A stretch of 64,000 nucleotides of DNA, taken from positions 73,532,001-73,596,000 of the forward strand of contig CM060732.1 of assembly GCA_030704615.1 (NCBI GenBank), given 5' to 3'. Below, one piece after another: positions 17,330 to 41,315 of this stretch. Position numbers and translations under genes: made by a program. Position 1 is the stretch's first letter, and every line of letters begins with the position of its first letter. The notes below the pieces were generated by a model. The model did not search any database, was not told the DNA's origin, and saw only the letters and a list, made by a program, of their open reading frames with translations. This DNA is from Takakia lepidozioides. Its lineage: Eukaryota > Plantae > Bryophyta.

Positions 17330-20273
17330 TCACCCTTGCAGTTTAGGACAGAGTGTGCTCGTTGGCAACGCTGTTGCACCTAAAAAATCAGGACAAACAA
17401 AAATGCTCCAAATATGAGTACACCTTTAGTTGGAACCTATCCGACAAACAATAGACTGTCATTGACCACATCACCGAGCAGATTGATTGCTTTGTAAGCA
17501 CAAATGACTGATTGCCTAACTGTTTGTTAGAGCTGATATCTAGGCCTGTCATCTGGGAAACTTACAAAGGGATGTGAAGCAAGGCTGCTTGAGTGCGGGG
17601 TCTTCTTCCAGAGGTGGGGGTTGTTGCCCATATACCATCTCGCAGCTCATATCCTCAAAATCTGCATGTCAGAACATTACATTATAATCCCAACCCTTGA
17701 CACTACAACCAACCAATCATGCAGTGCTATCAAACATTTCTGTTTACCAGATGGACTGTCCATTGGTAGAGGTTTGACCACCTCATCTTGTCCGTGCTTG
17801 AACAGCTTGTAATTCTCCTCAAATAAAAAAGGTGAATCTGTAAGATACTAACTGCTTGATCACACTACATCTCCTAAATTAATCCCTCTTGGGTGACAAT
17901 GCACTTGCTCAAATGCCCACACACCCCAGTAACATATAAAGAATCACCCTTGCTAGTAAGCGACAAGTAGACATCCTGTATATAGACACGTCGATGACTT
18001 CACTCTGGTTGATTTAGTTTAAAGCTATGGCTCCTTACAGTTACACCTTGTAATCTTCTCAAGAGCAGAAATGTCCCATTTTACAGACCAAGAGAGAGAC
18101 TTGCATGAATGTAGTCTACTGAGAAACTCATGGGAATGTGCTTTACCAGACTTGCCTCAGGAACAAGGGTCACAAAACGAGGAGAACATCTGCAAGGAAA
18201 GAGGAAGTGAAGTCCTTCTGGATAGCTACAGGGAAGAACATACTGGGTGTCATCGTAAGTGGGAGGCCAAATTCTTTGGTAAAAAAGTCCTGAGTTGGGA
18301 TTTTGCACATGTTGACACACATGCCCACACATCCACTGTTCTCCAGGTACCTGATTAACCACACCCAGGTTACCCATCATCATACTCTGAGCTCTCAAGT
18401 TGATTTCTGGATCGCACCCAAAGAGAGTGTCACAACATGCAATGCATTTGGTTCAACATCAGAAGGACACCGTTTCTATAATGGCACCACTGCCACTTCT
18501 CCAATCAAATGCTCACCCTATAGGATACATGTTGCTTCCAACATGTGGCATAGAAATTTCTGGTATCTATCCGTAGCATAAAACCTACCTTCAAACTTAA
18601 ATACACAACAGACAGTTTGTTGTCAGGTGAGCCAGTTGAGAAGTACACAAACTTTAAGAGGACTTGACCCATGGAAAAGCTCTCCTCAAAGGCAGAGGAA
18701 GGAGCTAACCTGCACTTGGAGATCTTCACAGCACTTTTTTGCTTCACCCCATTCACCTCCACCTCCACCAGCTGCTTCCACCCATAAAGCTCCCAATTCA
18801 ATCCAGACTCAACTGTGTCCATATGCATTTCTTCGATCTTCAACCTTACAACTTATTTCTTTTGCAAACTCCTGCACCTACAAATGTAAGCAATTGCCAA
18901 AAAGATTTCTTCTGAGTGAAAAGCTGCATACATTTCGAACATTACTCTCCCAGCAATGGCACATAGCTTTGCACACCCAAAAATGACAAAGAACAGGCAA
19001 CTGAAGGCAAATCCACTTCTGCAAAATTGAAGGGTGCATATGGAAGTTGCTCATGGTATTGTCCAGCTACCTCACAAGGTCCAACCAGCCACTGGAAAAA
19101 TGGCACCGTGATTGCTGCATTGATTTCAGCAGACAACTTGGTTGGAGGAAATAGCTTCCGGAACTGTACAGAAGACCACGACTAACATAATTCAGATGTC
19201 GATTTTCCATTTGAAGATGGTGGCACTGACCATCTCAATAGACCAACTGACAAGCTCAAGTGACTAGCAGCGAGCAATCAAAATCTCCTTTCTTCCTGCA
19301 ACTACTAGCATACTCGTCTTGGAAGGGTGTACACAAACAGCAGCTTATGGGCCTTGTGACCCACAAAACCATCAGCTGAATAATAGCACACAGAGTAGGA
19401 GCTGAGGTACTGTTGCTGGAGCCCCAGGGGGCATGATCGACAGAAGCACTTGGCGTACAGCTGCTCTTTGCTCAGATGCTGTTCGGCCCTTCATCACGTT
19501 CTTTGATGTCTCCACCATGCCCTCATAACCATCCAACTGAGTGGATTGTCCTATGAACAAAACAGAGCCAAAATCTAGCGGTCAGTGAACCTTCCCTGAA
19601 TACAGTTTAGGTCTACTACCACTGCGTAATACGGTCTGTTCTCCAGTAGAAAACCCCGAAGAGATTAGCAGCAGAGTCTCGCAAAGCACCCAATTCTTGT
19701 CATCAGAATCAAAAGTCCTGACTCATTGTTCCCGCAGATGGAACGAAGGTGACACATTCATAGTTTCAAGCACTGCGGAAACGTATAGCGTCCCACTACA
19801 ATGCAGGCTTCATATGTTTTTAAGCCTTCATTTCCTGGAATTGGGCGCCCGAGTCCTTCAAACATGGCTGCTTCCCCACCACCGCCCCTACACTTGAAGA
19901 CCCCTACATATAAATTCCACTCTCCAACCGGAGGTACACCAAAGGAACGGGAGAAGGAGAGAGTGTGAGCTGAGTTCAAATTATAGCAAAGACGAGTGAA
20001 ATCGTGGCGAAGAGAATGCAAAAACGGAAGACGAGTTGGGAGGGTACCAGTGTATTGATCCATCTTGCGCGAGAACAGGGTTATGAAAACGTTATCAATC
20101 ACACTGTCCTTGTAGCGTGTTATCTGCCCCATGGGCGCTGGCTTCCCTGTGGGTTCGGCCAGCCCACATCGCACTGCATTGGGCCTCGCATATCGATACA
20201 ATGCAATTTGAGGCCTTCGCTTACCCGAGGAACAGATGCCCTCCCAAGGCGCTCGAACAGGCACAGCCTGCAT
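17330..20273 (-). CDS. Beta-carotene isomerase DWARF27-like protein (DUF4033), D27-like1 type, 7 exons
   Basis: [135 protein letters not shown]...[15 protein letters not shown]. Confidence 0.92.
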
Positions 20274-24639: not shown

Positions 24640-27600
24640 GTCATGTTGGAAAAAAAATTCGAGCCAGTGATGGAGCTGTTACGGGTGCAGGAACTGGACT
24701 TACGGTATAAATTGGGAGATGCACCAGCTCTCCTACGCAAGGAGTCGTGGACTGAGTTCTGTGAAGCTTTGTCTGGCTGTAACTCTCTTCAGAGCCTCTA
24801 TTTACAGGTCTTGCCTTGCTGATCATGATTTGTTCATTTATTGTCATTGTGGCATTTCCAGATAGAAGCTTCCTTGACAACAACTATGTAATTCTTGTCC
24901 TCTGGACAAAACCCTTCTCATTTTGTTTTGATGCTCTTCCTGTGCATATACACAGGGTAATGGATTAGGTGGAAGCAGTAAAGAGGCATGGGAATTCGTT
25001 CAACAGCTCTCTGCAGCAATTTCTGGAGTTCCATGTTTGCAGATTGGAATCAAACAACTTCGGGTAGACTGGTGATCAGAGATTTGGCAAGTGTGGAATC
25101 AAAATTGTTGTGGAGGACTAGAGAAGGACCTTTGGCTCCAGGCAATTGTCTACTTCAGCTGCTACTGACCGTGGTGCATCTGTTTCAATGTTGTAAGTGA
25201 ATGCTTGAATGTGTTCCTTGTGCTGTAGCTAAACTCATCTTAGGCAGTATGGAGAGCTGAAATAGGAGGTGCACTTATAATATGGCAGGGGCTATCTGAC
25301 AGGTGCTCAACATGTCAGCCAATCAATTGGGAGATGATCACTTGAAGCTTAAAATATCTGAATTTCAGCTTTCCTCCTCATTGCATGTAAGCTTGTCTCT
25401 CTTGTTTACTTGGGCCATATACATTCCAGCTAGCTGTTTTTGGGCGTGGCAATATGCAGCTGCATTTACCTGGAGTTAGGCTGTGATTGTCATAATAGTG
25501 TGGAGAAACTCTCGTGGTGACTGACGTGCTTTTCTTTTATTAGTACTGCAGACAAAGTGTTTCATATGCATGGAAGGTGGAACTATGTCATGCCAAGACT
25601 AATCATGAAATGCTAATTTCTCAACTAAAGGTGCATCTGTGGCACAGGCGCTCTATCTGTATGCCAATGAGATAGGGGATGATGGTGCCTTGGCTATTGC
25701 TAGGGCTCTTCTTTGTAACCCAAGGTACAACTCTCAAGATGACAGGCCTCAGGTCGATTCTTCAATGATAAGCCTGATTATGATGATGCTTGCAATTGAG
25801 TGGGGTAAGATTTGCAATCTGTCCGTCGAACACACAGGTTTAGAATCCAGGACTAAGTAAATTACAGGGACTGTTGCAGGCTTAAAATGATAGAGCTGAG
25901 CTCAAACAGGGTCTGTGATGCGGGTGCGATTGGACTCGCAAATGCCCTGCGAGACACTGAGCTTCTTCATGAGATATGGCTTTACCTGGTTGACAATCAG
26001 ATAGGGAGTAATGGTTTACAAGCATGAGGGTGTGTTTGTATCTGGTTTCTGAACCAGCAATATAGTAGTCCAACAACATACCTATTTTTCAATTATAGCT
26101 TACATCCCATTGTCTGCTGATGTATTTTGCTTACAACAATGGACTTCCCATATGTTGGCAGGTAGACGAGATCAAAGGTGTCAATGTCATGTATAGTATC
26201 GACAGTTTTCTGTCAGGAGAACATGCTGTGAGTAGGATTGGCAAGAGCAAAGATACCAGCTTGGAAGGTAGACCATCCTAACTCTATACACATAGAGCTA
26301 GAATATTTTATTTCCTGCAAAAATCCTCAACTAAGGAGTATCCCAACATGCAAGTCTTTCTGTCGGTATGATGTGAGGGCTGAAGTGGTCAAAGCTGGGA
26401 TGGAAGCACAATATAAGATACCACAGGCGATTTTATCTGCCATGGTCATTGTGTCGGTTTTGCAGGTACATCGTGTAGCCCTAGCCCTGCAATTGAATAC
26501 CACGAAGAGAGGCCTGCACTGGGAGAAACTCATCATGCAGATGCACCGCCAATTACTACTGATGCATATGTTTTGAGCTCTATCTATGCAGCCAGAATTG
26601 TGCTTTGCCTGTGCATAACTTAGGTGATCTCAGGTTCAAAGTGTCCACCTTCCAACAGAAAACAGTAATCCGTCAGGATGAAGATACGCTATAATTTATG
26701 CTTCCTTCGGGAGTCTTTGCAGCCAGAAGAGTCATTCAATTAAAACCACATTCCATCTCTTAATTCTGAGTTGGGGAAGTGTTGGGCCTTCCTATGCAGT
26801 TCAGTATACAAGGCTGCAAATAACCAGAAAACTGAGGTTATGAGATTTAGAATGTGACTTTCCTCCTTTAGAGTGAATAAAACAAATTAGCCTTATCCTC
26901 TTCCTGCAACAATAGCAATATTGTTGCCATAGAAACAACCACGATCTGTGAAGTAATATGCATTATTGCACTTGGTAATCTTCTTCAAAGGGTGTCTAGA
27001 GGGAGGAGAGGACAACCTGGGCCATACTTCAAACCCATTTGACTTCTCCATCTCCAAGAAGGCAGTGATGACCTTCACAGCTTGAACGCCCACCCCATGC
27101 TGATGTAGAACATCCCTCCAAGACTCGGGCACAAGTTGATCCAGACTTCCAAGTAGTTCATCAGTAACTGCATGTTCTATTATGTGCTGTGATGGAAGAG
27201 GTGCAACTGAAAGCCTGCCAATCTAACATGATGGGTGACAATTGGCTTGTTCGTAGGGCTGAGCTTATATTTCGTGCCTTGCAACTCTGCCCTCATGCCG
27301 ATGTGCGGGTCGTGATCATTGGGTATTCAGGCATTTTGAAACCTCTCTTGCTTTTAGAACTTCATAGACTACAAGATGTTGCCTTCATGTGCTCTTTATT
27401 ATGGGAAAGGTGGATTAGAGGACAAGTGTGGCTCATGAGGCAAAGCATGGCACCTATAACGTGGCCGTGGGATGTAAGTGTGTGCCAGACCATATCCATA
27501 TCCAGTAAGGGGTGAGGCTGATGGCTTGGCATTCTCCAATCGCCAGGTTAGGTTGACCAGATTCTCTCTGGTCCTTTGATTGTGTGGTCATTTGTTGTTT

Positions 27601-28845
27601 TTGTGTGAGAGAGAGGGAGAGTCATTACATTTTCTAGCCTCAGCAAAAGATGACATTTCTGCATTTCAGTGAAGAGATGCACTCCCTATGCAGAAATGTT
27701 TTCTCCAGATTGAGGTTCAGGGTCCAGTCTTCACATTTTGACGCATGAAGATATGCCATATCAGTTGCAAAGGACAAGTTATGGAATGGAACGGGTTGTG
27801 AAGCATTCCTGAATTGTGGAAGTGGGTGTTACAGTGGAGTGCGAGGAAAGCCACAACTCGCATCCTATCAAGCATTTTGAGGAGATTGAGAGAGAGTACA
27901 ATATCAGCACTAACTCGGGGGACCTTTCAGCTTGGGCCAAGCAAGTATGCTCCTCTGTTGCTTACTTGATTCCTCTTTGTCTCGCACTTTTCACAGTTGT
28001 TTTCTTTTAATGGATGGAATAGAGGCAGACCATTTGCAGGGGTACGGATGTTTATTCTACAGTGCTCAACTCTCTAATCCTGGCCTCACAATGAGGGATG
28101 CTGATGGGTAAGGAGGCTGCTAGGTTTTGGCTGACCATGTGGGTAGGTTGAGGATCAAGGGATATAAAGGATTATGAAAGAGAATGTGATTTTGTTCTGC
28201 CGAATTGATAAATTTAACACTAGATACAAGGTATCGTAGGTGTGGGAGTAGCACCTTCAGCAAATTTCTAAAGTTTTGGAGGTTGGAAGGCTTGAGCGAG
28301 TTCCCCTTCTAGACGAGTGTCAGTGTGAAGAGTCGATATTGAAGCCCTGCTTATTGAGTAAAGCTTTGTGTGGTGGCAGGGTGTGCTTCTTTTAAACACT
28401 TCTTTGACCATCAATGGAAGCACAATGGAAAGTCACAAGCGGGTGTGGAAACCTTTTGTTGATGCTGTAATTGCAGCTGTTTCTTGTCGACCAGGTTCCT
28501 GCATCCCTTTTGCCCTCTGGGTTTGCATGGAGTGTTGGACACATTTACGAATAGTTTTCGGCCTGTGCGTGTCTCCAGGAGAAATCACTACTGATCGACA
28601 AAAGGCATCCAATCCTCAGGGTCCCTCACCTCCGCCCAGATAGTTTTAGAGGTAAGTGTGCTTCAGAATGCTCTTCTGACTCTTCTCTGCAGATTAGTCT
28701 CATGTCTTCTGACATTTTCTTTCCTCCATCCCTGGATGTCTTGCTCACAATGTCATGTGCTATGGAAGGTTGTGGCTACTTTACACAAATAAACAAGGTG
28801 CTCAGGGAGGGAGGAGTGGAGGAGATAGACTGGCAATTGCCATAA
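24640..28845 (+). pseudogene. RI-like leucine-rich-repeat + uracil-DNA glycosylase (UNG family 1)-like fusion pseudogene; 5' exon(s) possibly from ~23780
   Basis: LRR exons VQELDLR/GNGLG, VLNMSANQLGDD, ALYLYANEIGDDGALAIARAL, LKMIELSSNRVCDAGAIGLANAL..LYLVDNQIGSNG. UDG exons AELIFRALQLCPHADVRVVIIG/PYPYPVRGEADGLAFS, GDLSAWAKQ/GVLLLNTSLTI...SHKRVWKPFVDAVI...FALW, IDKRHPIL..PHLRPDSFR/GCGYFTQINKVL...IDWQLP*. Lesions: stop or frameshift near 26025, frameshift near 27875, apparently lost donors, one inverted exon. Confidence 0.78.
27017..27167 (-). other. Inverted exon of the UDG-like domain
   Basis: Minus strand CATGCAG|TT ACT GAT...VPESWRDVLHQHGVGVQAVKVITAFLEMEKSNGFEVWP AG|GTTGTC (151 nt). The phase-2 end joins the plus-strand exon at 27257 (AG+G = Arg, then AELIFRAL). 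Bracketed by CCTCTTCC (26897-26904) and GGAAGAGG (27194-27201). Confidence 0.85.
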
Positions 28846-30131: not shown

Positions 30132-32629
30132 CTAGTCCTCTGCATATGGTGCAGCTCCAGCGGCCCCAGGAGAAGCAGGTGTTGGAGGTTCAGCTTGGCG
30201 CTGCTCCCTCTCACGATTCCACTGTTCGATCTTGGCCCGCCGCTCTGCGGAACCTTCACGAGCCGGACTCCTCCCTCTTCTTTGAGCAGGGCTACGACTG
30301 CGACTTCTATCTCTTCTTCTTCCTCCCCCCCTGCGATCATCAAATGATCGACGATCGTCCCTCTCTTCAAAACGACGACCAAAACCACGGCCCCGTCCAC
30401 CTCGACCCCGACGTGGCTCAAAAAATTCCCTGCACACAAGACATCCACCAGCACCACATTGTACACCACATCTGTACTAGATATATTCATGCCAAAAGAA
30501 GTAACCAAGTACTGTCAGAGCATAACAATTGCAATTTAATCCACAGTAGGATTACAAAACCATACAGCTTCATTAATCATGAAAAAATAGAACGTACAGC
30601 TGCCAGATATACAAATACTTAAGGTCCGCTTTACACCAGGGACAGTGTGACACTTTAAAAATTGAAGCACTGGCATGATTGGATGAAAAAAGTCAAGTGT
30701 CGCCTGGGGCGCCTGGGTTTTTTCTTTGGAGGTGACACTTTGCACATTAAATGCAGATACGTGACACTTCTCAGGCCTCCTCCCATTCATTTTGATAATA
30801 TTATATTATTTCTGTACACTTCCAACCATTTGGAGGAAAAGTTGGCATTAAACAGCCGGAGAAGGTCATGTACTTCACCAAAGTGTCACCTGGAAACTTT
30901 ACACTACTTATTAGGTAACATCATCAATCTTTTCATGGGTGACAGTTTGGGTGACACTAGCAAAGTGTCACCTCAAAACTATCCCGGGTGTAAAGTGGCC
31001 CTAAGCTGACTTCCTGTCTCTATTCACAAGCTCCTCGCTACCACATAACTGCAGGAGATACAGCATTGAAACACAAATACACCAGTACTAACCTTTCTCC
31101 AAATCTACGAGGACTAGCAGGACCCCGTGCTTCCCCACGACCATATGGCGAGTGACTCCTACTGCGGCTACGCCTTCTGTAGCTTCCAAAAAGCTTCCTT
31201 CTGAGTTCCCTGTCACATGCCAAGAAAAACATTTCCTTTAACAGTCTAGGTAAATTTTGCTGGAAGAATATGTACAAATATTGATGTGGAGTAACAGTTA
31301 AAAACCTATTACATCTCTCAACAATAGTCACCTCGAGATTTTCTTCAAATGCATGAAGTTGCAATATCCTCCCCTGTTGCAAGTGTTCTCCTCATACTGC
31401 CTGCATGTGGCTTCCCGGAAATCTGTGACTGGCGAAAAGTCGAGGATGATAGGTCGACCTGAAAGGCAGAAAGTAAATCCTGTTAGAAACCCTCTCGCAT
31501 ACCATGGACAACTCTTCCAAACTAAACAAGGAGACCAAGTAAACAGGCTATGCACAAGCCTGGTGTACAGCAATGTTCCGTGAACAAAGCTACAAGAGCT
31601 TGCAAAATAAAAAATTTACAAATACAGTGAGCATAGCAAAAAAGGAGAATCATTTCTTTGATTTCACTAAACACAGCCAGGATATACCTGCATAGAATCG
31701 CCCATTCAGAGCATTCAAGGCAGCAGCAGCATGCTCCTCTTCACGAAACTTGACATAGACGTTTCCAATCTTCCAGAACGAGTACACAACATCAACGGAT
31801 TGCAAAATATTAGAAAAAGAACACACTCACGCTACATCACATGATGGTTCTCAAAAACCTGGTGGAGAAACAACATGATAGACAGTGATAGACAGATAGT
31901 ATAAACACTGGAATACTTACCATGTGATCAGCAAGATTGTCGCACACATTGAGATTCTCGATCTCACCGTACTTGCTTAGCTCTTCAAAGATGTCTTCGT
32001 AGAAATCCTGAAGCACACAACAAACGTAGATCAAAGCATTAGACAAAAAACGCTGATCTTCTCTTCTCCAAAACTGGCAAGTGATTCAAGAGCTTCACTC
32101 AGAAAGACGTGCACTTCACAAAGTTATATCCCCAGCAGTGAGTCGGGATGTAAACAGAAGAAGGCCAACAATAGCGGATCCGTTCCACCCACTGATTCTA
32201 CACGCGTTGCACTAAGCTGAATTTCCATCCCTTCTAAATCTACAATAACTAAAAACCCTCAACATATTCCAACCTCCTAAGTCGACTTTTATGCATGTTT
32301 CAGACGCACATAAGCGAGGCAGCTTACATAACAGTAAACAAGTGCAAGCCTCTCTGAATCAAAGGAAGAAGGCTGGGACGGACCTCAAAGTGCTCCTGAA
32401 GCTTGCGTGGATCGGACTGCTGAATATTTCCATGCTGGTCCACGCCCCCATGAAATCCAGCATCTGGCGACTGATACATATTAGCCAACAGCAGAGTCTG
32501 GCTAGCCGTAGGCCGGTTATGGAGACGAGAGCATCGATCCCCGTGCCTACACACTCCTATCTTGAAGTAAAACGGGCAGTTGACGCGATCCTTCTCCGTA
32601 CCGAATATGGATGCCAAATGCTCCGCCAT
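30132..32629 (-). CDS. U2AF35: U2 snRNP auxiliary factor small subunit (U2AF35), 6 exons
   Basis: [118 protein letters not shown] domain, plant [19 protein letters not shown] motif. Confidence 0.97.
30623..31001. mobile_element. Tourist/PIF-Harbinger-like MITE in the last U2AF35 coding intron
   Basis: 24-bp imperfect TIRs GGTCCGCTTTACACCAGGGACAGT / rc GGGCCACTTTACACCCGGGATAGT. TAA TSD at 30620-30622 and 31002-31004. Internal AAAGTGTCACC/GGTGACACT motifs in both orientations. Confidence 0.85.
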
Positions 32630-32949
32630 ACTTGCAAATTACGCCTCTCTAAGCTACCTCCCGATGCCAACTCTCTTTCCCCAAACACACAAGCTCCAAC
32701 TCCTCCCCACCCTCCGCGAATCTGCAAAGAGCAGCAAACGCAACGGCGAGCAACGCAGCCCCAAGAGAGGTGAGCGCAAGAGTTGCGAGAGAAGTATCTA
32801 GGGTTATGAACCCTGCCCGTAGTGGGCCGCCATCTGCCCTTACATAATTTCTTGTTGCCCGTAAATATTTCCACTCTCTCATATTTTTCTTCCTGCCCTT
32901 CCTTATGAGGGCAGTGTTGTAGACTCTGCCCTCGAAAAAGATCTTGACA

Positions 32950-38468: not shown

Positions 38469-41315
38469 TTAGGGGTTTTTTGAAGGATCTTCAAACTGGG
38501 ACAAGTCTGCAGATAATCGTGTGATTTGGTGCTGCAATGATGCTACAGAGTTGTCATTCTGTCCTTTCGTCTTACTCTTCTTGGAGGCATCCCCGTGCTT
38601 GAGCTCCAACCTGTATAGAGCACACTCAGTGCAAGAACTAAGTTCATATTCGTACATATGCCACTCAAAGGGACCATCAGGCTGGGGGTCCATATAATAG
38701 GACCGCTTGAGCCCCCCCAAGTCCTTCATGACTTGTTTTCTTGATTCATGCCAGCCTCTTCCTCCATAGTCAGGCAGAGATCGCTGCTTGCGTGTGCCAC
38801 TCTCATATGCACGGCGTGGTTTGTCAAAAAAAAGCCACTCCCGCAACACTTCCCCATGTAACATAGCTACATCGAACAAATCTGGCTCCCCCCAACAATT
38901 CCAACCCAGTAATCATGGCATAGCCACTTGCCACCTCCAATAGATACCTAGAACGTTCAACAAGGGAAGCAGCCAAAAGGTACCAGGTGTATGTCCTACT
39001 GGATAGAGCCTCACATTTGAATGACACATTTTTATTACCGTGTGCAAACTTTAAGGGAGGGTGCTGATGAACAAAATACAGTTAGTTAGATATATCCGCC
39101 TTCACAGAACTGGCAGCTCTTCACAGGAAGTAAAGATCTCCAACATTGCTGAGAAGCATACTATTGCAAGTCTAACAGATGCAAATATAGATTGTTGATA
39201 CCTCTGCATGACAGATATACAACACAACCTCGATAGAGGCACTACTTTGTGCACATCCACTCAGTAACTGCGGACCAGAAACTAATGGGTGTGTGATGAG
39301 GGAAAGGTGAAATTGAAGTATCCAGGACTCACTGACAGAGTATTGTATCCAACATAGACCATGCTTCCAGCTCTAATACATCGGATATAACCTCTTCATA
39401 CATGCATCATACAGATACGATTCATCCATCAAGGAGAAAAATCTGTCCATGTGTATAGCTAGCTAACTGTATCCAACAAACAAGCCACGCTGTGTAACAT
39501 CAAGGTCAAGCAGCAACAATAACAACAACATGAACAGGGCATACCTGGAGCATTCCATGGTGACTTGGACGTGGCAGCCCCTTGCAATTCTGGAACACCA
39601 ACAGCCTGACCACCAACACGAGCCGCCAGTGCTGCAAGTAGAGGGCCATCCTTCAAGTCAATGCCACCTGGCCTGAGCACAGGGCACATGCCTGGAGCAC
39701 CTTCGGTCACAGCCAACTCTTCATGAAAGTTGCTGCAGTAAACAGTATCTTCTTGACCTGCTCGAGCAGGCCTAGGGCAATCCCACAGGGCACATTTGGG
39801 CCTCAGAAAAGCTACTGATGGAGGGAGTGTGTCTGCCCTTGACGGCCTGTTACAGACTGCATATGACCTCTGTATGTGCTGCGGAAGTGTTTGTAATATG
39901 TCATCACACCTACCAAGAGTTGTCCCTGCATTGTCACTGAGTCGACCCTTCCCAACGTCCTCTTGAACATGCCCGGATCCCCCATGGCCATCAAGTCGTG
40001 CAATCCCACCTCCCTACAGGTTGCAAGCCCCCAAAACATCAAGATCAGCTAAACAGTCATCACCAGTTTATCACCACAGTTCGTCCCAGATCTGTAGCAG
40101 AAAGAGAAATAATTCTTTTGGCAGTAGGAGCCAGCATTCTTGACGCAAAACATTCTCGTACAAAATTAGGTGGCTTCTATCAAACACTAAGCAAACATTG
40201 CTCCATGGTTGAGCTAGAAAGGCACCTGCTGAGAAGGAGAGATGCCCACAATGTTACCCATAGCCTGGTGTTCCAAGTGAGAGGTTGTTGCTGCTATGCT
40301 ACTACTGGCGTCATCGTCCTCATCATTCAATTGCAGCAGCCTCTCCATGTCTGAGGACAGTTCTGATGAGCTTGGACTTTCCATCTGCACCAGAAAGTTG
40401 CTGGGAGCCTCAAACTGTAATTCATCATTATTGAATCTACCAGCTTACTTTAAGACTCGACCAAAAGAGTGGTGCTGTCAAACCCGTAGCACCACACTCT
40501 TGGTGGTGGAATTGCGTGGAAGTCAAGGCCTTTAAGGTGTATAAAGAGCATGCTACACAGCTGTTGATAAGGTTTCTATTCGATAACAGAGTAGGTGAAG
40601 TGGCAGCCGTATGTAGGATTTAACATAGCAAAGGTCTCAACTGTGGACATTCTTGGTAAGATCCAGCTGGAGACCTACACACATGTGCTCCAAACTGGAG
40701 CAACATCTAGTGGACCCTGCACAACTATTTACAACATAGAATCAAATAATGCCAAAGGCCACTACGAAAGTGTACACCTAGAATCACTCAAGCACTTGCA
40801 CTATGTGGGCAAGCAGCTGAGAAAGGGAATCCCTGAAAGGGATGGTAGATTATAATTGTCTCTCTATGCTTTGAAAGCAAGCCACCCATGTTTGGTGTAG
40901 CAAATCTTTCGCACACTTCCGTGAAATAACACTAGTAGTCTATGCGTCTATACCCTTCACACCATTGTCCCTACAGAAAGGGTTGAAAGACTGAGAAACT
41001 CTGACGATCGCCAAGATCAGAGCATAAAAATGGCGGCAGTCAAAGAATAAACTTGGGAGGAGAGACCAGTAATGAGGGTGTAGGAGAGGCCTCCCGCAAC
41101 TCCGCCTTCCATTCACGCAACATCTGATGCATTTGTTCCTCCAGAAGTGCCACATCCTTTACCCGGTTTTCCCTCCTTGCCTGTTGCAACTCTGAAACCA
41201 TGCCTTGCAGGTCATCCACCCTGGTGTTTGCTTTTGCCCGGAAGTGCTGCGAACCTTTGCTGACCTTGTGCTTTGCACCTGCGTCACTCAGATTATGTCC
41301 TTGCTTAGGAGTGAA
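38469..41315 (-). CDS. VOZ: VOZ (vascular plant one-zinc-finger) transcription factor; start codon not resolved
   Basis: KANTRVDDLQGM...LEEQMHQMLREWKAEL, SSDMERLLQLNDEDDDA, AFLRPKCALWDCPRPA, PGMCPVLRPGGIDLKDGPLLAAL...AATSKSPWNAP, LREWLFFDKPRRAYESGTRKQRSLPDYGGRGWHESRKQVMK..GLKRSYYMDPQP..EWHMYEYE..CALYRLELK. Confidence 0.93.

Follow-up and report, generated by a model that had tools for sequence, protein, structure and literature searches.

An internal exon facing the wrong way: a probable micro-inversion at the joint of a putative LRR-UNG-like fusion gene in the moss Takakia lepidozioides

Introduction

In a 64,000-nucleotide stretch of the genome of Takakia lepidozioides (here the window, within which all positions are counted), a segment with the appearance of an internal exon lies on the minus strand between exons that otherwise read as one gene of the plus strand. 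This raises the question of whether the segment, here called exon A, belongs to that gene, how it came to lie on the other strand, and what its orientation does to the protein. Flipping a single segment restores the exon phases, the gene order and the colinearity of the protein, with exon A coming into register with family-1 uracil-DNA glycosylase (UNG, or UDG). We favor, at a probability of about 0.6, a recent and ordinary gene-breaking micro-inversion of the exon that joins the leucine-rich-repeat (LRR) part of the gene to its UNG-like part.

A plus-strand gene with leucine-rich repeats and a UNG-like domain

The plus-strand exons downstream of exon A are colinear with family-1 UNG, exon by exon, in comparisons with the TIGR00628 profile, with UNG chains in the PDB and by tblastn of E. 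coli UNG, the last of which returns the same exon order as the profile matches. All profile, PDB and protein searches were run on single exons rather than on the joined protein. Upstream of exon A, also on the plus strand, are exons that encode RNI-type LRRs, for which the matches to LRR_6 are weak. The exons considered here are the following.

25868..26013, plus strand: L5, the last clear RNI-type LRR exon (...SSNRVCDAGAIGLANALRDTELLHEIWLYLVDNQIG..), with a weak LRR_6 match (E 4.5e-4)
27017..27167, minus strand: exon A, flipped, 151 nt, recognized by its translation, its AG and GT sites and an anchored match to E. coli UNG
27257..27322, plus strand: exon B (g + AELIFRALQLCPHADVRVVII + gg), TIGR00628 UNG profile positions 38-57
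27489..27546, plus strand: exon C ((G)PYPYPVRGEADGLAFSNRQ), TIGR00628 positions 61-76, with its own residues in place of the GQDPYHGPGQAHGLAFSV motif
27840..27944, plus strand: exon D (..HPIKHFEEIEREYNISTNSGDLSAWAKQ), kept in frame only by a weak acceptor, at 27840 or 27846
28380..28520, plus strand: exon E (GVLLLNTSLTINGSTMESHKRVWKPFVDAVIAAVS...FALW), the best-conserved UNG exon, matching PDB UNG chains (E 3e-4)
28579..28651, plus strand: exon F (EKSLLIDKRHPILRVPHLRPDSFR+g), with His187 kept and Leu191 lost, matching UNG chains
28769..28842, plus strand: exon G (..CGYFTQINKVLREGGVEEIDWQLP), the UNG C-terminus, TIGR00628 positions 202-222

Exon B is preceded by ...ttcgtag and followed by a GT donor at 27323. 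Exon E matches TIGR00628 with an E-value of 2.6e-7 (positions 114-156), and exons F and G match residues ~170-227 of the UNG chains. The last codon of exon G is Pro, followed by a TAA stop at 28843-28845. When GT/GC donors and AG acceptors were enumerated, all junctions from exon B to exon G could be made in frame. For exon D, a stronger acceptor (TTACAG) lies five bases upstream (exon start 27835), and its use would shift the frame. The intron between exons E and F is only 58 nt long.

The moss domain resembles family-1 UNG (TIGR00628, PDB entries such as 1AKZ and 1EUG) in the colinear order of the matches to exons B, C, E, F and G. It also keeps the Asn of LLLN (Asn123, within GVLLLN), the stacking Tyr and Phe and His187 (within VPHLRPDS), and ends in IDWQL-. 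It differs from family-1 UNG in two of the motifs. Exon C reads G-PYPYP, in which Gln63 is replaced by Pro and the catalytic, water-activating Asp of GQDPYH (Asp64 in E. coli numbering) by Tyr, and the Leu of HPSPLS (Leu191) is lost. Also unlike family-1 UNG, the domain sits behind RNI-type LRRs and has its first exon on the other strand. As predicted from the translated exons, the gene is a fusion of RNI-type LRRs with a catalytically altered UNG-like domain.

Position, splice sites and phases of exon A

On the minus strand, exon A (27167..27017) is open. It starts after an AG acceptor (27169-27168) and ends before a GT donor (27016-27015), and the sequence across the two borders runs ...catgcag|TTACTGATGAA...TGGCCCAG|gttgtcc. 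Its 151 nt are made up of two codon-completing bases, 49 full codons (27019-27165, minus strand; TDELLGSLDQLVPESWRDVL...NGFEVWP) and a trailing 'ag', and the 49-amino-acid translation is TDELLGSLDQLVPESWRDVLHQHGVGVQAVKVITAFLEMEKSNGFEVWP. The intron phases are 1 on entry and 2 on exit. Phase 1 is also the phase of the L5 donor, located either at 26008 (GGA|GTAATG) or at 26014, which places the end of that exon at 26007 or 26013. On the other side, the phase-2 exit fits the start of exon B, as the trailing 'ag' and the 'g' at 27257 on the plus strand complete an AGG codon (Arg) that is followed by AELIFRALQLCPHADVRVVII.

The content of exon A falls into two parts. Its start, TDELLGSLDQL, is the end of the last LRR helix, and the remainder is an N-terminal UNG-like segment (PESWRDVL...NGFEVWP). 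L5 ends in a phase-1 donor, and TDELLGSLDQL extends the ...DNQIG repeat in the manner expected of its helix. Exon A is accordingly taken as the joint between the LRR and UNG-like parts. There is no plus-strand copy of exon A anywhere in the 64-kb window. The initial annotation had described a stop-free minus-strand exon with intact AG and GT sites, had noted that its phase-2 end is completed by the next plus-strand exon, and had taken it for a flipped part of the plus-strand gene. The sequence is as described, down to the split Arg codon, and the attribution to the plus-strand gene is borne out by phases that fit on both sides together with the in-register UNG match set out below.

Exon A matches the missing UNG segment in register

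The alignment of exon B is gapless and fixes the register of whatever exon precedes it, the last residue of which must fall on residue 39 of E. coli UNG. Anchored in this way, the comparison is a prediction with no free parameters. In the fixed register, EKSNGFEVWP of exon A stands opposite ERQSGVTIYP of E. coli UNG. The match spans E. coli residues 25-39, directly before the segment covered by exon B, and is ungapped over the last 10-15 residues. The scores for the last 10, 13 and 15 residues are 24, 23 and 20, respectively, with shuffle p-values of 5e-5, 1.5e-4 and 3.5e-4.

The same segment aligned freely is much less distinctive, and this is the chief reason to consider that it might be a chance open frame, with the UDG-like part starting at exon B or using an exon of the plus strand. 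Similarity between exon A and E. coli UNG in free alignment is weak and not significant (BLASTP E 0.28; shuffle p 0.03), and exon A had no match in Pfam, NCBIfam or the PDB and no score against a UNG profile derived from 80 enterobacterial loci, a profile that is too narrow for the purpose. The plus strand also offers substitutes, as 50 phase-compatible segments lie on it between the flanking exons, and the frame before exon B is open from 27189 and contains ATGs at 27192 and 27228. However, chance frames would rarely reach the anchored p-values (5e-5 to 3.5e-4), and in the six-frame translation of the window only two of 70,405 positions score equally well at k=13, one of them presumably exon A itself. 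Among the 81 phase-compatible open AG..GT segments found on both strands between the flanking exons, exon A and its variants have the top score (29), whereas the best plus-strand segment scores 19 and none of the plus-strand segments resembles UNG. With splice phases that fit on both sides in addition, we consider a chance frame very improbable. Because of the anchored in-register match (p ~3e-5 to 3e-4) and the first rank among the 81 candidates, the predicted identity of exon A as the missing UNG exon can be regarded as established at about 90-95%.

Consequence for the gene

As exon A is 151 nt long (3n+1), skipping it shifts the frame. In the present orientation, joining a phase-1 donor to exon B yields (R/G)LSLYFVPCNSALMPMCGS and then a TGA inside exon B, with at least four exon junctions downstream of it. 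A stop codon with exon junctions downstream is the classic setting for nonsense-mediated decay. From the frame shift and the TGA in exon B we infer, on sound grounds, that the UDG-like domain is no longer made from the gene's own start, and a message spliced past the flipped exon would be a target of nonsense-mediated decay. A truncated UDG-like product is possible by other routes, either from frame-keeping cryptic exons, which exist among the plus-strand segments, or from the in-frame ATGs at 27192 and 27228, which open straight into exon B.

The initial annotation went further and held that the inversion had inactivated the gene. The loss of the UDG-like part follows from the TGA in exon B and stands, but the inversion is not established as the cause of inactivation, in view of the lost Asp, the weak acceptor of exon D and the cryptic exons. 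A real inversion may instead have struck a gene that had lost its function beforehand, as one lesion among others. Such a history would account for the Tyr at the position of the catalytic Asp64 and the loss of the intercalating Leu191, for an exon D that is kept in frame by a weak GAG acceptor only while the strong TTACAG shifts the frame, and for the very short E-F intron. It fits poorly with about 220 UDG-like codons that run through seven exons without a stop or frameshift. The similarity to UNG is low and detectable exon by exon only, and the open frames argue for long selection on the reading frame. Catalytic residues, moreover, are typically lost also where such a domain has been re-purposed for binding. 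We therefore think it rather unlikely that the gene was dead before the flip.

Inverted repeats, hairpins and the extent of the inverted segment

Three features between L5 and exon B bear on where the breakpoints may lie. None of them is assigned to a strand.

26897..26904: left arm CCTCTTCC of an 8-bp inverted repeat, candidate left breakpoint, at chance level
26905..26927: TGCAAC and an overlapping perfect 9-bp hairpin (GCAACAATA / TATTGTTGC, 4-nt loop), from the list of inverted pairs and from DNA folds
27194..27201: right arm GGAAGAGG of the 8-bp inverted repeat, candidate right breakpoint, at chance level

CCTCTTCC and GGAAGAGG are exact reverse complements, 289 nt apart, and TGCAAC follows directly after each arm (26905-10 and 27202-07). 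When the inner 289 nt are flipped by script, GTTGCA-GGAAGAGG-TGCAAC arises at the right junction, a 6-bp hairpin with a folding energy of -3.8 kcal/mol (DNA parameters). Re-inversion also puts the region of the 9-bp hairpin against GGAAGAGG-TGCAAC (27194-27207), which results in two adjacent hairpins. With the same DNA parameters, the 9-bp hairpin folds at -7.0 to -7.3 kcal/mol and the whole re-inverted junction at -10.0. These hairpins fit structure-prone DNA at the breakpoint, without proving it.

Whether the flanking inverted repeat or microhomology exceeds chance was tested with a negative outcome. An exact 8-mer inverted pair flanks exon A in 22-77% of dinucleotide shuffles, the rate depending on the left interval that is allowed (22% for 215 nt, 51% for 515 nt and 77% for the whole 1 kb). 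In the real sequence, exon A lies between the arms of four further inverted pairs (8-9 nt; one is a 9-mer at 26218/27170), and nine exact inverted pairs of at least 8 nt occur within the same 1.2 kb. Shuffles seldom produce the additional 6-nt match beside the arms (1-3 in 2000), although this match was picked out post hoc. Base skew did not place the breakpoints, as the samples were too small and the signs mixed.

The 8-bp repeats had been proposed in the initial annotation as the bounds of a ~290-bp segment and as evidence for microhomology. The arms are indeed exact and 289 nt apart; however, because the repeat does not exceed chance and competes with four other pairs, it does not establish the breakpoints, and '~290 bp' is one possible size among several. 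For the same reasons (a pair of this kind in 22-77% of shuffles, and the four rivals) the repeat cannot serve as evidence for microhomology. The hairpin expected upon re-inversion was reproduced by the scripted flip at the energy given above, as a feature that had been found after the fact. The smallest piece that could have been flipped comprises exon A and its splice sites (about 27015-27169), and the largest extends from the L5 donor to the acceptor of exon B. The length of the inverted segment would thus lie in the range from 155 bp to about 1.24 kb, with the 289 bp between the arms as the neatest fit.

A transposon scar was also considered at the junctions. hAT elements make 8-bp target duplications; a hAT scar was rejected, as there is no transposon end at either junction.

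A micro-inversion as the best explanation

Taken together, we propose that a small in-place inversion of DNA in this moss lineage or individual flipped the exon at the junction of the LRR and UNG-like parts. The inversion is probably recent, since exon A keeps its frame and both splice sites, and since the other six UDG-like exons (~170 codons) are open and separated by GT-AG introns. It may have arisen by a replication template switch or by microhomology-mediated break-induced replication (MMBIR), in either case between short inverted repeats of an intron prone to hairpins, or, alternatively, by two breaks that were rejoined the wrong way round. Template switching is a known mechanism and is plausible here, and with the 8-bp repeat at chance level the locus carries no positive signature of an inversion mechanism.

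Alternatively, exon A may be on the plus strand in the organism, with a piece of ~0.15-1.2 kb flipped by the assembly or its consensus. Scaffolding or repeat-driven errors are unlikely because the window has no Ns and because the region from 24 to 29.5 kb is single-copy within the window. The inverted repeats that might mark the edges are 8-9 nt long, far below the k-mer or overlap length of any assembler, and a consensus of many reads would not keep a rare chimeric read. The dominant stage of mosses is haploid, which excludes errors from the merging of haplotypes. We consequently infer that the inversion is in the DNA of the organism and not in the assembly alone, and regard an artefact as unlikely, while giving it appreciable weight.

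Mutations of this class, microinversions with short inverted repeats on either side, have been described before, and template switching and MMBIR have been offered to explain them (PMC8755829); two further papers also concern template-switch and MMBIR models (PMC5453318, PMC2621351). In the human-chimpanzee set of Potapova, Kondrashov and Mirkin (2022), the definite cases are 17-33 nt long and were proven against the un-inverted sister genome (PMC8755829). Like these cases, the moss locus has a short stretch flipped in place, candidate edges marked by short perfect inverted repeats, and a junction prone to hairpins. Unlike them, the moss segment measures 155 bp to ~1.2 kb and is known from the inverted sequence alone, and its 8-bp repeat is not above chance.

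Could the flipped exon be in use? Its intact splice sites and frame, together with the exact 8-bp inverted repeat on its flanks, would suit either antisense trans-splicing or DNA that can switch reversibly at these repeats. Exons on antiparallel strands are joined by trans-splicing in mod(mdg4) of Drosophila, where those on the opposite strand serve as alternative 3' terminal exons and have promoters of their own. The moss gene is like mod(mdg4) in having coding exons of one protein on both strands, but it differs in that the case concerns a single internal exon, which would require two trans-splicing events, and in that it is seen in DNA alone. A DNA switch is disfavored by the repeat, which does not exceed chance and whose 8 bp would not suffice for any known site-specific invertase, and reading the list of ORFs for 15-40 kb of the window revealed no invertase gene; the locus shows no resemblance to a site-specific invertase switch. 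Nothing supports either a reversible switch or cross-strand splicing, and we consider it extremely improbable that exon A is in use. The initial annotation had rightly ranked both as less likely.

A broader reading of the micro-inversion is that it represents one case of recurrent small in-place inversions across the genome, caused by a lineage-specific quirk of repair or replication or driven by a transposase, that repeatedly flip single exons. We hold this to be quite improbable, and continued use of exon A by cross-strand splicing to be less likely still.

On its own, the flip of exon A is an ordinary gene-breaking micro-inversion. What goes beyond the routine is that the gene broken is an unusual fusion of RNI-type LRRs with an altered UNG-like domain, and that the flipped exon is exactly its joint. 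The locus also carries a warning for annotation, as gene predictors will either overlook the UDG-like domain or assemble an incorrect model at this place.

Searches for relatives and neighboring genes

A phmmer search with the 49 amino acids of exon A found no orthologue; it returned only three repetitive proteins, with spurious hits that sum weak repeat matches. Word searches were made with the 109-aa minus-strand frame, with the 115-aa plus-strand frame that crosses the right junction and, as a syntenic handle, with the first-exon frame of a neighboring D27-like gene. All three were without a match under a length rule of 0.55-1.75, which places multi-exon proteins outside their reach. Exact look-ups of three ORFs of the window found none on record, and no paralogue of the locus is present within the window. 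Scores in an ESM Atlas feature search were 0.83 or less and are uninformative. In a metagenome scan with exon A, a single GC-rich bacterial contig came up and was rejected, as it shares RDVLHQHG by chance. Besides the LRR-UNG-like gene, the window contains several intron-rich genes, named here from their translations: a U2AF35-type splicing factor, a VOZ-like gene and the D27-like gene.

A probable leucine-rich repeat and UNG-like fusion

The splice phases permit a single continuous gene in which RNI-type leucine-rich repeats (25303-26013, plus strand) lead into a domain resembling family-1 uracil-DNA glycosylase (UNG), encoded with 27017-28842. The joint between the two parts is the flipped exon itself (27017-27167, minus strand), whose first residues continue the last helix of the leucine-rich repeats. 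A literature search for a fusion of RNI-type leucine-rich repeats with an UNG-like domain found no paper.

Both catalytic motifs of the UNG-like domain are altered. The GQDPYH motif of UNG reads G-PYPYP (27489-27546), with Asp64 replaced by Tyr and His67 by Pro (E. coli numbering), and HPSPLS has become HLRPDS (28579-28651), with the loss of Leu191. Asn123, Tyr66, Phe77 and His187 are retained. As read from the translation, this catalytically altered domain looks like a pseudo-enzyme or a binding domain rather than the product of random decay.

Two features of the gene model are less regular. At the exon starting at 27840, use of the strong TTACAG acceptor (27835) would break the reading frame, which is kept only by weak GAG acceptors (27840 and 27846). 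Further downstream, the intron at 28521-28578, between the exons at 28380-28520 and 28579-28651, is short (58 nt). Early decay could lie behind these features, or they could reflect merely unusual splicing.

Plus-strand alternatives around the flipped exon

An open plus-strand frame runs from 27189 into the next plus-strand exon (region 27189-27322), and three ATGs (27192, 27228 and 27231) lie in frame with it. Transcription begun here could, judging from the sequence, give an N-terminally truncated UDG-like protein; the frame itself probably arose by chance. Upstream, several open plus-strand segments bounded by AG and GT lie at 26302-26569 and match the flipped exon in phase at both ends; one of them, of 49 codons, spans 26302-26452. 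Used as cryptic exons, these segments could keep the frame, and they could lead gene predictors into error.

Neighbouring sequence

At 26742-26861, about 36 bp to the left of the left arm (26897-26904) of the 8-bp inverted repeat around the flipped exon, two 19-nt arms that are 74% complementary form an imperfect inverted repeat around 82 nt. No target-site duplication is evident at this imperfect repeat, which may be either the decayed remains of a small element or a chance pairing.

Three neighbouring genes were recognized, the VOZ-like and D27-like names being tentative readings of the translations:

19758-20273, minus strand, D27-like first exon
30135-32638, minus strand, U2AF35-type gene, multi-exon and apparently intact, 3 kb from the flipped-exon locus
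38469-38879, minus strand, VOZ-like last exon

Every exon of the U2AF35-type gene is in order and on one strand, which argues against flipping as a general feature of the surrounding DNA.
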